The position numbers were made by a program, and so were the translations under genes. From contig JBBPEB010000026.1 in assembly GCA_039096225.1 (NCBI GenBank), positions 841,357 to 905,356 on the forward strand: a stretch of DNA of 64,000 nt, in the 5' to 3' direction. This stretch comes from Blastocystis sp. Blastoise. Taxonomy: Eukaryota > Protista > Bigyra: Opalinata. This document shows, one piece after another, positions 15,065 to 46,402 of this stretch. Numbering within the stretch: position 1 is the stretch's first letter; each line of letters opens with the position of its first letter. The notes beneath the pieces are model-generated. The model saw nothing but the letters and a program-made list of their open reading frames with translations, searched no databases and was not told the DNA's origin.

Positions 15065-15309
15065 ATTTTAATATTTCTAGAGATGAAGAAAAAACTCTCT
15101 TGGAATGAAATTATTACTCTAAGAATAATTAACCGAATTATGAAAATATTGTTTTTTTTCAATGAACTTAATTGGAATAATGAAAGAATATAGTTTTATA
15201 TAAATAGAATAATGAGAATTATTCTTCATCATTAACTATATCAGAATATTCTTTCTAAAAAGTGATATCTTCCACTAAATACACTGGTAGGCACTTTTGA
15301 GTTTTTGAA

Positions 15310-15680
15310 GGTTTTTGATTGGCTAATTTTCGTTCAAAACTTATTCAGCCAATAAAATTTGAATAAAAAAAAGACTTAGGCAAAAAAAATAAAATTTTCA
15401 CAAAATTTTTAAGTCGACTTTTGATTTAGACTCAAAGACCCTATTTGACATATTTTAACAAAGAATTGACATTAATTTTTGTTTACAGAGGGTCGCACAA
15501 TATCAAAAACGCTTTTCTTTTGTTTTAAATCGTAATTCCGACAAATAATGGGGTCAATATTTTAAAACCTCTTGTTACTCTGTTTAAAATAAAGACCCTC
15601 TCAGAGTCGCACACATGATTAAAAGTGAATAAAAAGACCTCTATGGGTCAAAACCAAAATTCAGCCAAAAAGTCAAAAAT
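15310..15680. repeat. Left subterminal region: ATTGG...CCAAT inverted pair and dispersed GAGGGTC/GACCCT and GTCGCACA motifs in both orientations
   Basis: AAAGACCCT at 15434 and 15591, CAGAGGGTCGCACA at 15486, GAGTCGCACA at 15604, AAAGACCTCT at ~15633. Confidence 0.55.
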
Positions 15681-16869
15681 TTATATTTTTTTTACACTGA
15701 AAAAATGAGCCGAGCCTATTTGTTCCATGGGCAATCAGACCAGAGTTTTCAATTTTTAAAATATTTACGGGAATATTTTTATTGTTTAAAAGTGAGTCTA
15801 TTTATATTTTATTTTATATAAGAGGACACAAGTGTTTTAAAAAAGGTTTTTCATTAAATTTTATTATGACTCAAAGTTCCGCATACAAAAAGTATGTCAA
15901 AGCTTATAGATAAAGGGTTCTTTTTCAGAATCAACTAAAAGTTTTTTTTTAAGTCATTTTTAGAGTTAATTCTTCAACGGATGGACATTTTAAGTTATAA
16001 TTAATAGTTTTTGGACGAGTTAGTCAACAGATCAGAGAGTCAACAAAAATGAGTTATTTTTTAAAGGTTAAAAGTGTGGGATGCAGTAGTATTGTATAGA
16101 TGGTGTAGTGTGAAACGTGTCATAACTTATAAATATGATAGTGAGTCATAAAAAATTAAAAAAATTAAAGAAAGGTATTTTCATGAAAAATTTTGTATTT
16201 CACTTGAACATTTGAATTTATTAGTGAATTTATAATTATTTTTATTTTATTGTCTCTAAGAGGAATTAGAGCTTCTCACAGTGTTTATGTATGTTTAGAA
16301 GACAAGAATGTATTGTGTCAGTTTTCCATTCTGTAGTCCCTCTTCCTATCAGACTGTCTCCTTGGTCAACCTCAAAAATTTAATCAACAGAGTTGCTGCT
16401 ACTTTTGTTTAACAAGATTATTTCCTTGTTCTTATTCCAACGCTTTCAAGAAACAACTTGCCATGCTATAAAAAGTATATAAATGTATTATTTGTTTTTC
16501 TATTCATTACTTTTTTTTTCAATTACTAAATATAAATATGTTTTTAATATTGGCTTATTTTAAATTGTATACAATTTATATTAATTATAATTTATATTAT
16601 ATAGAATGATAGGTTTTGTTGTCTATTCATACATCAAATTGTTAGTTAAGTCCTGTTAAAGATTAAACGGTATATAGATAGAAATTATTATTAATATTAT
16701 TATTATTATTATATATTATATTATTATTATTATTATTATTATTATTTGATTATTATTATTGTTATTATTATTATTTGATTATTTATTACGGGTATTCTTT
16801 AAAAAAATTAATAAATTACCCTAAAATTATTAATAATTTTTTTATTTTCTAAAAATATTTTATATATAG

Positions 16870-18345
16870 ATCTAAAAGAGATAGTTCTAGACTAAATAAT
16901 CTACATATAAATTCTAATAAAATAAATAAAATTGATATAAATGGATCAGCTATAAATAATATGAATAAAGATAAAAATAATAAAGAAACAGATGAATCGA
17001 ATCTCTCTCTTAAAGATAATTCTATTTCTATAAATAATAATAATATACATTCAAATAAACATCGTAAAGAATCAAATGTTTCTAATTCTTCATCTTCTTC
17101 ATCTTTATTTTCATCTCAAGATAAAAATACAAATAATTCAAAAGATATATCAAATAATAAGAATCATTCTTCTGTTAAAGGTAATAGTATTCATGATTCT
17201 TCTAAAAATATTATAAATTATATAAATTAGATGAATAATAGAAATCATAGTATTGATTATTCAAATATAAATAATATACAAGAAGAGGAAAAAGAAAGAA
17301 AAGAAGAAAGTATACCAGAAGAAAAAGAACAAAAAGAAGAAAAAATAGAAAAACATAAAGAAAAAGAGACAAGAGAAGAAAGAAAAGAAGAAGATGATGA
17401 TGAAGAAGAAGAAGAAATAAAAGAAAGAGAAGAAGAAGAAGAAAAAGAAGATAATGATAATGATGATGATACTACAAGTATAATAACAGATACCGATAGA
17501 GTATCTAATCCTATTATTCGTGGCCGTGGTCGTGGACGTGGTAAATTACGATCTCATGGTAGAGGAAGAGGAAGAGGAAGAGGAAGAGGTTCATTCTATC
17601 ATTATGACGATAGTGATAATCAAAGTGAAAATGAAAATGATGAAACATTTGAAATAGATAATGATAAAAATGATAAAAAAGAAAATTATCATTCTATTTC
17701 ACGTCATAATTATGATTCTACTTATAATATAGATGGAAATGATTTAGATAAATATAAACGTAAAGGTATAAATATGAAATTAAAAAAGAATAAACGTCGT
17801 AATAATGATGATGATAGTTCTGATGATTATGTGAAACATAGAAGGAATAGTATTTCTAAAGAATCTTTAAAAAGAAAATCAAGTATTAAAAGTGATTATT
17901 CTTCAATAAGTAAATCTAAAGATGATAGTATAAAGAGTTCTACTATAAATAATTCTATAAAGAATAATTCTATTCATATTAATAAACCATTATCTTCAAT
18001 AGATGGTAAAACATTATTAGATTTAGAAGGATCTGCTCATAAAAATTCACGGTTATTTGAAGAATATCATTCTATGGATATATCAAATGAAACTAATAAT
18101 AATAATACTAATGGTAATTAAATATTAATAATAATAAAGATAATAATAAAGATAATCATAAAGATAATCATAAGTATAATAATAATAATAGTAATATTAT
18201 TATTATTATTAATAATAATATTACGACAGCAACAACAACAACAACTACTACTACTACTAATATAGAGAATATTCCTAATAATACTCCTTATAAAGAAATA
18301 TGGCATATTGGTCAAATAATAAGAACATATAATAAAGATGAGAGT
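16870..18345 (+). pseudogene. Disrupted low-complexity 5' part of the captured chromatin gene (N/S-rich, acidic, RG-repeat)
   Basis: In-frame TAG at 17228-17230 and a frameshift near 18119-18123. The frame resumes and runs into ATG 18346. Possible further degenerate exons at ~16336-16670. Confidence 0.7.
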
Positions 18346-43600: not shown

Positions 43601-44206
43601 GGAATAAAAAGAGTAGAAGTAGTAACAGGTATGTATATGTTTTGAACATAATTCAAGAATCTAGTATTATTATAAAACTTTTTATTATATTTATATTTAT
43701 TATTATATATATATATATATATATATATATATATATATATATATATATATATATATATATATAGGTCCAAAAGCAGTTGATTATTTATATAATGAGCATA
43801 TATCTTTAAAACATTGTGTGAGAAGCATAATATCCAATCATCTGCATTGGATAATGTTTTATCCAATCAAAAATAAATAATACAAGAATTATCCAATTAG
43901 AATAAGTTAATGATTAAATGTATTATTAAATCCATTCAGCCTACTACTTCTTATATATGTATATAACTATTATTATTATATTTTTTTGCTATTTATATAC
44001 TATGTTATTTATATATATAGGTAATAATAAAGAAGTTCACGTATATATCATACCTTCCGAATTCTCTTCCGAATGCTATCGAAAAAGAAGTCAATTCAAA
44101 ATCTATTAATATATATATATATAAATAATAATCAATCATATGCCAAAAACCTATGAAGATAATACTAGCTGGAAAGTATTTATAGCAAATCTTTGATGTA
44201 TACATA

Positions 44207-44531
44207 TATTATTATTATTATTATTATTATTATTATTATTATTATTATTATTATTATTATTATTATTATTATTATTATTATTATTATTATTATTATTATT
44301 ATTATTATTATTATTATTATTATTATTATTATTATTATTATTATTATTATTATTATTATTATTATTATTATTATTATTATTATTATTATTATTATTATTA
44401 TTATTATTATTATTATTATTATTATTATTATTATTATTATTATTATTATTATTATTATTATTATTATTATTATTATTATTATTATTATTATTATTATTAT
44501 TATTATTATTATTATTATTATTATTATTATT
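44207..44531. repeat. Intronic (TAT)n microsatellite, ~108 units
   Basis: Direct observation; ends just before a TATAG acceptor at 44540. Confidence 0.95.
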
Positions 44532-46402
44532 GTTATATAGGATAATGTACAGTGACTTAGATCTGTTAGATCAAATTATATATAAAGATTTAATAGATAT
44601 AAAGAATATTATATTGTAGAAGTATATATATATATATATATATATATATATATATATATATATATATATATATATATATATATATATATATTACTATTAT
44701 TATTATTATTATTTCCTATATATACTATCCATTAGTATTATATATGTTTTATAGGCTAATTTAATTGAATATACTTTATTTAATTACAATAACCTCTTTT
44801 AAAATATCTTCATTATATTATTTTTTATATGATTTATTATCTTCCTTCTAGTCTACTCTTTGTATTAATTTTAATATATCAAAAGAAATAACCTATTTAG
44901 AAATAATAAACTATAAAGTAACTACTCTTCTTTCTCTTCTATTACTACATATGTATTATGAATTCTACAAATATATATATATATATATATATATACTCTC
45001 CTTCCATTATAAATATTAGTCTTTATTTGAATCATTATGTGTTTTGTTCAAAACTGATTTGTATTAAACTGCATGATAAATAAATGTCATTATTAAATTA
45101 GCTAATAATTAATTTTGTGTTTTAATAGTATCTATTATTATTGATATATTTTTCACTATAACAATATAAATCATATTTATTATTTTACTAAATCATTCAT
45201 GCAAGTGTATTTTTACTCTAATAAATATAGAAGAATAAAATTAATTTATTTCAAAGAATGTACTAATTAGAAAAAAGTAATGCCACATAAATTATCTTAT
45301 TTGATAATTTGTTCTGTTCTTATCAATTATGTCATATTATTATATCAATAGAACCTATACATGAGGGCAATTATGACTTCATTCCTTGAAAATATTAAAA
45401 TCGTTATTTCGGTAGTCTCTACACGTTATTAATAAGAATAAATAAACGTATACAACTCATTTTAAACTCTATTAATAGACTTTTGTTTAACGAAGACTTT
45501 TTAGTATTAAAAAAAAGAAAAACAGACGTTTTCATCTATCTCCTGGATTTAAATCAAATTTTAATGAAATTTTTATATATAAATAAAAAGATTCTTTTTT
45601 ACCCCCACCCCTGTTTATTTTTTTATATTTTTCAATCTTTACATAAATATTTTTTCTATTTATATTTCAAAAATATATAATAAAGGTTCTATAAAATGTA
45701 TTTTTATTATTTTATACATATAATAGTATATAGGTTTCTTTATATCATCAAAATAATAAGTAAATGAATACGATTATGGATAAGGTATATATATATTTAT
45801 TCTATAATTAATTCTATAGGTTTATTATATTATTATCAACTCAAAATATCAAAAACACTAATATTGGAAAGGTATGTTTCTATTCATTTTTACTAATTAT
45901 ATTCTAGCATCTATAGGAAGACCAAGTATCTCAACCTTGACCCATTACAAAGCTTCTTATCAATGGTATTTACTTATATTCACCTTTTATTCTTTACATT
46001 CTTATCATTTCTTTATATATAGGTATTGAAACTTTCTGCGGTCTTATTAGAGTGTTAATAGCTGTATAGATTACTCCATTACAAACTTAAATTGTTCTTC
46101 TCTTCTTCTTTTTTTTCCTTGTCTTTTTTTCTCTTTTCTTTGTTCTTTCTTCTGTATATTAATGCTTGAAAAGTTATCCAATCGTTTTGTTTATTTTAAA
46201 TATGTTTTATTGGCTGATATAAAATAATATATAATTTTCATTGGGTCATTTTTAAAGACATTTTTTATATTCCCGTGAATTTATCAAATATATTAAGGTT
46301 TTTCCCCATGCTTATAATTAAGCTGAGAGGGTTCTGATTCAGTCTGATGACAAAACCTCTCTTTGTAGAGGTTTTGTAAAAAAAAACTGCCTCATAGTGA
46401 AT

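Follow-up and report, generated by a model that had tools for sequence, protein, structure and literature searches.

Two CACTA-type elements in a subtelomeric window

The DNA analyzed here, a 64,000-bp stretch from the tortoise gut isolate Blastocystis sp. 'Blastoise' (C17:841357-905356; C numbers denote assembly contigs), is referred to as the window and has a TTAGGG telomere at its end. It contains two transposable elements, E1 and E2, each of which has CACTA-type ends and carries intron-containing fragments of host genes whose intact parents lie elsewhere in the 33.3-Mb, 34-contig genome. The genome sequence is an R9 Nanopore/Flye assembly of a diploid, collapsed and polished. Protein searches were made exon by exon or with existing proteins, and spliced models were joined only for frame counts. 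E1 comprises the following features.

15282..31192, E1, an autonomous CACTA-type element of 15,911 bp, with other copies at C2:77035, C8:2194228 and C15:1019301
15282..15293, plus strand, left terminal inverted repeat (TIR) CACTGGTAGGCA, 12 bp, left flank ATA
15294..16850, plus strand, left arm, 82-95% identical to more than 30 other elements, with a (TAT)n-rich, intron-like end just before the cargo splice acceptor
16851..18120, plus strand, older 5′ piece of the MLL cargo, ~95% identical to its parent (C26:409820-411158), with a premature stop at 17228-17230
18121..22940, plus strand, PHD/bromodomain piece of the MLL cargo, 97-99% identical to its parent with introns kept, the last ~370 bp at 74%
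22981..24145, plus strand, second, older captured fragment
24682..28527, minus strand, transposase gene, 5 exons, ~1011 aa, with D260, D351, C370xxC373, MH511, H672xxxH676 and E696
29237..30042, plus strand, ORF2, divergently oriented to the transposase gene
31181..31192, minus strand, right TIR CACTGGTAGGCA, right flank GTA

Along most of their length the four E1 copies share 98-99.99% identity, and the C2 copy has a divergent right arm (76-83%). The transposase open reading frame (ORF) is intact, as a first, sequence-only reading of this DNA had proposed, and its D260, D351, CxxC, DPMH, HxxxH and E696 residues align with those of distant homologues that match Pfam Transposase_21 and DUF4218. 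This set corresponds to the motifs described for CMC transposases (PMC12730594). Searched against Pfam, the E1 protein itself has a sub-threshold DUF4218 match as its sole match and no direct match to Transposase_21, the cut-off of which is passed by a 28%-identical paralogue and by remoter homologues. Genome-wide, the transposase has 76 matches at ~50 loci; four are ~100% identical, and another family has nine copies with identical scores. Two RNA-type runs from two studies, one run possibly being DNA, contain 52% and 37% of the transposase-region words, which suggests transcription. ORF2 shares 41-47% identity with the counterpart found in another family and is a candidate TnpA analogue; it has no TnpA match in Pfam, and its weak feature likeness to the FokI/AlwI DNA-recognition domains is a lead only. 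An AlphaFold model (pLDDT 53) was too poor for use.

The target site duplication (TSD) of E1 is imperfect (ATA/GTA). The right flank is 99% identical to subtelomeric DNA on C29, with the copy starting exactly at the TIR and the likeness running on for ~25 kb from the right end of E1 towards the telomere, while the matching place on C29 has neither E1 nor a copy of the E1 left flank. E1 probably sits at a rearrangement joint, which would account for the mismatched TSD; a simple point mutation is ruled out because the right flank is of the C29 type from the TIR onward. Positions 31193-64000 of the window form a subtelomeric block with 91-99% identical copies at many contig ends, and to the left of E1 a 120-bp island (14930-15050) has at least 30 genomic copies at 75-82% identity.

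E2 lies within this block, where it interrupts a gene encoding a TLDc domain.

39237..39328, plus strand, start of exon 1 of the interrupted TLDc-domain gene, a member of a multicopy subtelomeric family; left TSD AAT at 39326-39328
39329..46399, E2, a non-autonomous Pack-CACTA element of 7,071 bp with 13-bp TIRs
39329 (plus strand) and 46388-46399 (minus strand), E2 TIRs CACTATGAGGCA
39342..40423, plus strand, left arm, common to 3-kb cargo-free elements and to transposase-bearing elements on C7, C19 and C23
40424..40683, plus strand, left (TAT)n tract and left capture breakpoint, corresponding to the intron 4 tract of the parent
40684..44206, plus strand, mitochondrial alanyl-tRNA synthetase (AlaRS) cargo, exons 5-18 of 19 with introns, the exons 80-98% identical to the parent (C16:1862825-1867417)
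44207..44530, plus strand, right (TAT)n tract and right capture breakpoint, corresponding to the intron 18 tract of the parent
44531..46386, plus strand, right arm
46400..47882, plus strand, right TSD AAT and the remainder of the interrupted TLDc gene

The E2 TSD is perfect (AAT/AAT). Removal of the element restores a TLDc frame of ~354 codons only if the number of flank bases omitted is 0 or 3, and at least 12 paralogous TLDc loci are empty sites in which the E2 flanks are joined with the 3-bp TSD overlap. Close to its end, the interrupted gene contains a premature stop as well (47847-47849). A different CACTA element of 28.9 kb with CACTAGT ends (C18:5388-34245) is inserted in a paralogue of this gene, one base off the E2 site (39326-39328 / 46400-46403) and symmetric about the same AATT palindrome, which suggests a target hot spot.

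No transposase match was found in E2. Cargo-free elements of 3.0-3.4 kb with both E2 arms occur on C14, C16 and C26, and the same left arm, with its (TAT)n end, is present in the transposase-bearing kin of E2 on C7, C19 and C23. On the features tested, E2 is a Pack-CACTA element, while E1, which behaves as a Pack element yet encodes an intact transposase and so is not non-autonomous, is a cargo-bearing autonomous CACTA element. The sequence-only reading had paired the two as an autonomous element and its Pack relative. Both are indeed CACTA-type, but the transposase of the E2 kin is only 40% identical to that of E1, so E1 is not established as the partner of E2, and the two are better described as apparent sister subfamilies than as a demonstrated autonomous/non-autonomous pair.

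Family size and shared architecture

The TIR pattern CACT-N3-AGGCA, which had been noticed at all four ends of E1 and E2 and is present at each of them, has 113+113 matches on the two strands of the genome (226), compared with 16+12 (28) for a control; the variant CACT-N3-AGGC[CGT] occurs at chance-level counts. The matches are mostly arranged as facing pairs spaced 4-57 kb apart. Among pairs in which both flanks are readable, 40 of 50 have a matching 3-bp TSD (p ~2e-27 against a 1-in-8 expectation), and the genome scan proposed in the earlier reading returns many TIR-bounded copies. The match rate is 28/30 for CACTA-type pairs and 12/20 for CACTG-type pairs, the lower value plausibly being due to arm swapping and rearrangement.

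E1 and E2 also share their terminal architecture, as had been claimed. The alignment of their left ends beats 300/300 shuffles and that of their right ends 299/300. Subterminal motifs are shared at 15313 and 39359, and at 15434 with the reverse complement at 39549, and three right-end motifs are present in both elements. These motifs are short, have few repeats and occur in both orientations, with no dense array in E1 or E2. The family shows CACT-ended TIRs, 3-bp TSDs, empty sites and a CMC-motif transposase, and E1 and E2 are best read as two subfamilies of a large CACTA/EnSpm radiation in tortoise-associated Blastocystis. The family appears to have been active recently, and we infer present-day mobility.

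The general plan of these elements is two conserved arms around a replaceable cargo bay, with the transposase and ORF2 on the right-arm side in autonomous members. The arms (16290-16480, 39950-40330 and 44530-46070) contain short, GC-richer, exon-like blocks between intron-like tracts and no long ORF; these blocks could possibly serve as non-coding leader and trailer exons to which the exons of a cargo are spliced.

Several family members contain other transposons. The C10 element carries a nested full Helitron RepHel ORF and a DUF4371 ORF, a C8 member a 2.7-kb Helitron-like insert, a C15 member a nested 14.4-kb CACTA element and a C3 member a nested Tc1/mariner transposase. These inserts are at L020:2761-7653, L018:6026-8446, L008:2511-5227, L011-L012 and L015:8242-9351. 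Miniature elements of 97 bp with CACTATTAGGCA ends and 3-bp TSDs are found at C8:600098-600194, C15:526190-526286 and other sites.

Origin of the cargoes

The parent of the E2 cargo is an intact 19-exon gene on C16 that encodes a 951-aa AlaRS with a presequence-like N-terminus and adjoins the ribosomal S17 and IF3 genes. The genome contains a second, intron-poor, cytosolic-type AlaRS gene (C19:64509-67424), which was rejected as the source since it has no DNA match to the cargo; only the C16 gene has been captured. The cargo exists in four copies (E2, C3, C10 and C15), all of them broken, and in E2 it is a pseudogene with ~8 stops, several frameshifts and a synonymous divergence (dS) of 0.13. 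The introns are retained, as first read from the sequence, and capture therefore took place at the DNA level. Retrotransposition of the cargo was rejected on the same grounds; the C15 copy (L016, C15:714887-721163) apparently lacks introns 12 and 17, which are kept in the E2 and C3 copies. The 4.6-kb AlaRS parent contains only two (TAT)n tracts of at least 6 units, and both coincide with the ends of the cargo (chance ~0.001).

Three AlaRS elements have the same arm-cargo joins, each with a matching TSD (AAT, ATA and AAT). The joins recur at four loci each for the E1 and E2 types, with distinct TSDs, showing that the element moves together with its cargo and that loaded elements have multiplied at new sites.

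The parent of the main E1 cargo is a complete MLL/Trithorax-like gene on C26 with PHD, bromodomain, ePHD, FYRN and SET regions, flanked by Rab, PRKCSH-like and TLDc genes. That the C26 copy might be another element was considered and rejected, as it runs on into ePHD, FYRN and SET among host genes. The chromatin-reader ORF noted previously is real, an open 1430-aa frame from Met 18346 to the stop at 23008-23010, and it lacks ePHD, FYRN and SET; the SET half is missing from all copies. The C8 and C15 copies of E1 contain a contiguous 8.5 kb of MLL at 98-99% identity; in the window and C2, the PHD/bromodomain piece comes after a 2.5-kb deletion whose ends meet at (AAT)n repeats. The cargo is layered, with a ~99% identical middle, a ~95% identical 5′ end (window and C2) and a final 370 bp at 74%. 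The 5′ piece is also found in at least seven other elements, mostly near transposases 49-62% identical to that of E1. The second captured fragment of E1 has, outside the four E1 copies, a sole match at C16:1194823-1196072 (67-75%), presumably a host gene.

A third cargo is probably represented by UTP20. The UTP20_N domain occurs in one long parent on C34 and in 19 N-terminal fragment copies, 17 of which have identical scores and represent a very recent burst; the N-terminal fragment is listed at C34:675944-678284 and 19 other loci. For eight of the fragments, a 73% match to the E2 left arm is located 5.0-5.3 kb upstream. The carriers likely belong to the CACTA family, but this is unproven since their ends were not found with two end-motif variants.

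The proposal that each element carries a host gene thus stands as regards intron-containing host DNA with an intact parent among ordinary host genes. The cargoes themselves are broken fragments, and the accompanying description of a recent gene-duplicating family, borne out by the many copies and by loaded elements at several loci, overstates what is duplicated.

Capture model and alternatives

The observations are best explained, with a probability of about 80%, by a CACTA family in which host DNA is captured under microsatellite guidance and later altered by exchange. Repair of a break in the cargo bay of an element would proceed by switching templates at AT-rich microsatellites: the strand would invade a host intron at a matching (TAT)n tract, copy several kilobases and return at a second tract, after which the loaded element would transpose. 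Homologous exchange, involving the parent gene as well as sister elements, would then alter cargo and arms. Consistent with this model, cargo-free 3-kb chassis exist, and the left arms of relatives end in (TAT)n. Judged from the joins, template switching between bay and host-intron microsatellites is the probable route of capture, and the subsequent refreshing and rearranging of cargo and swapping of arms by homologous exchange is perhaps somewhat favored over its absence. The cargo itself is very probably for the most part decaying passenger DNA.

Evidence for exchange comes from the E1 cargo, in which the sharing of parental alleles switches between copies in tracts: C8 and C15 share over 31 sites, C2 over five consecutive sites and the window copy at scattered sites. 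This pattern indicates exchange after capture, with the parent or among copies, with the caveat that the assembly is a polished diploid Nanopore assembly.

Four points weigh against this explanation. The microsatellite rule is drawn from one capture event (AlaRS) and a single junction inside the MLL cargo; divergence is too great for the outer MLL breakpoints to be scored; the chassis without cargo could have arisen by deletion and not be precursors; and polishing of a collapsed diploid Nanopore assembly could partly explain the mosaic of single-nucleotide differences.

The SET-less PHD/bromodomain cargo could instead be a co-opted chromatin reader that guides insertion or counters silencing, by analogy with VANC/KIU and with TET-bearing fungal EnSpm elements. 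It rides in an autonomous element, MLL pieces recur across several transposase families, and in two of the four E1 copies (window and C2) a frame of 1430-1450 aa from Met 18346 is retained with intact splice sites. The ratio of nonsynonymous to synonymous substitution rates (dN/dS) relative to the parent is 0.09-0.18 in the PHD/bromodomain exon, and copy-private changes number 9 synonymous to 9 nonsynonymous (p=0.003). However, in C8 and C15 this exon is disrupted by a stop and a frameshift, an open frame will often survive by chance at ~0.5% divergence, and most other families keep just the low-complexity MLL 5′ piece without the reader domains. The synonymous excess is also expected from copying or refreshing off host alleles, and the low dN/dS, which fits either refreshment or selection on the cargo, is taken to favor refreshment. 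Co-option is accordingly considered improbable. A broader proposal, that the family constitutes a genome-wide exon trap in which microsatellite-filled introns make many genes capturable and an expressed, host-refreshed MLL cassette aids targeting or resistance to chromatin control, is likewise doubtful.

The route described for Arabidopsis Pack-CACTA elements, in which a gene segment is enclosed by two neighboring insertions that each lose one end and form a hybrid that mobilizes the DNA between them, is documented for Pack-CACTA1a (PMC6379663), and the Blastocystis elements are numerous, insert into genes and nest. This route is nevertheless unlikely here because no arm or TIR sequence is present around either parent segment in the parent-locus DNA examined. 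The E2 arms are full-length and match those of cargo-free kin, and both E2 joins fall on the two (TAT)n tracts of the parent, which tandem insertion does not predict.

False chimeras created by mis-joining or cross-polishing of repeats are a very unlikely explanation. The assembly is of a type in which they could arise, and the flanks do not match in three of the four E1 copies; yet the cargo copies are 1-14% diverged from their parents, with shared lesions, at different sites and with matching TSDs, E2 has exact empty sites, and an artefact could touch only the SNP mosaic and the E1 junction. That host genes underwent ordinary segmental duplication and afterwards became enclosed by unrelated transposon ends is highly implausible, common as subtelomeric duplications are in this genome, since identical arm-cargo joins occur at different loci, with TSDs that match at each locus and differ among loci.

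Significance and comparison with known systems

How TIR elements capture genes is still debated, tandem insertion being set against gap filling or FoSTeST. The 33-Mb Blastoise genome offers dozens of young events together with intact parents, empty sites and cargo-free chassis, making the breakpoint rule directly testable. The system further connects two features of the tortoise clade that lack an explanation, long introns rich in microsatellites and a large non-genic space, and in practical terms captured fragments can inflate gene counts (19 UTP20, 4 AlaRS and 4 MLL). The genome paper (PMC10690189) gives total repeat fractions only, and in the literature searched, mostly without subscription journals, we found no description of CACTA elements in Blastocystis and no report of such capture in another protist.

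Gene capture of this kind had been taken to be described mainly in plants, which holds for Pack-CACTA; gene-carrying TIR elements are known from animals as well (PMC8277862). The animal Pack-TIRs, for which gap filling and FoSTeST have been invoked, resemble the Blastocystis elements in template switching with breakpoint microhomology and in multicopy cases far from the parent. Their captured segments have a median size of 224 bp and their microhomologies span 1-36 bp (median 2), whereas the Blastocystis cargoes measure 3.5-8.5 kb, contain as many as 14 exons and show homology in the form of a trinucleotide tract. A chromatin-related sequence in an autonomous element has precedents in VANC/KIU of VANDAL elements and in TET-bearing fungal EnSpm elements (PMC13317346, PMC12730594). 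Those are long-conserved element genes, in contrast to the E1 cargo, which is ~99% identical to the host gene and broken in half of its copies.

Pack-CACTA and other Pack-TYPE elements of Arabidopsis, rice and maize share CACTA TIRs, a 3-bp TSD, host fragments and genic insertion with the elements described here (PMC6379663, PMC8903248). They are non-autonomous by definition, have been described in plants and are attributed to tandem insertion followed by aberrant excision, whereas the AlaRS joins in Blastocystis point to microsatellite-guided template switching. Among known systems, the Tpn1 family of Ipomoea nil (PMC5105172) is the closest; its members average ~7 kb (161 bp to 40 kb) and have AT-rich 3-bp TSDs, some with mismatches. 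As in E1 and E2, the ends are conserved and the interior is replaced by captured host genic DNA. The Tpn1 carriers differ in being non-autonomous and in having 28-bp TIRs and long subterminal repeats, compared with TIRs of 12-13 bp in Blastocystis, where a multi-copy, transposase-encoding element itself bears cargo. Large-scale Pack-CACTA gene capture thereby extends from plants to a unicellular stramenopile.

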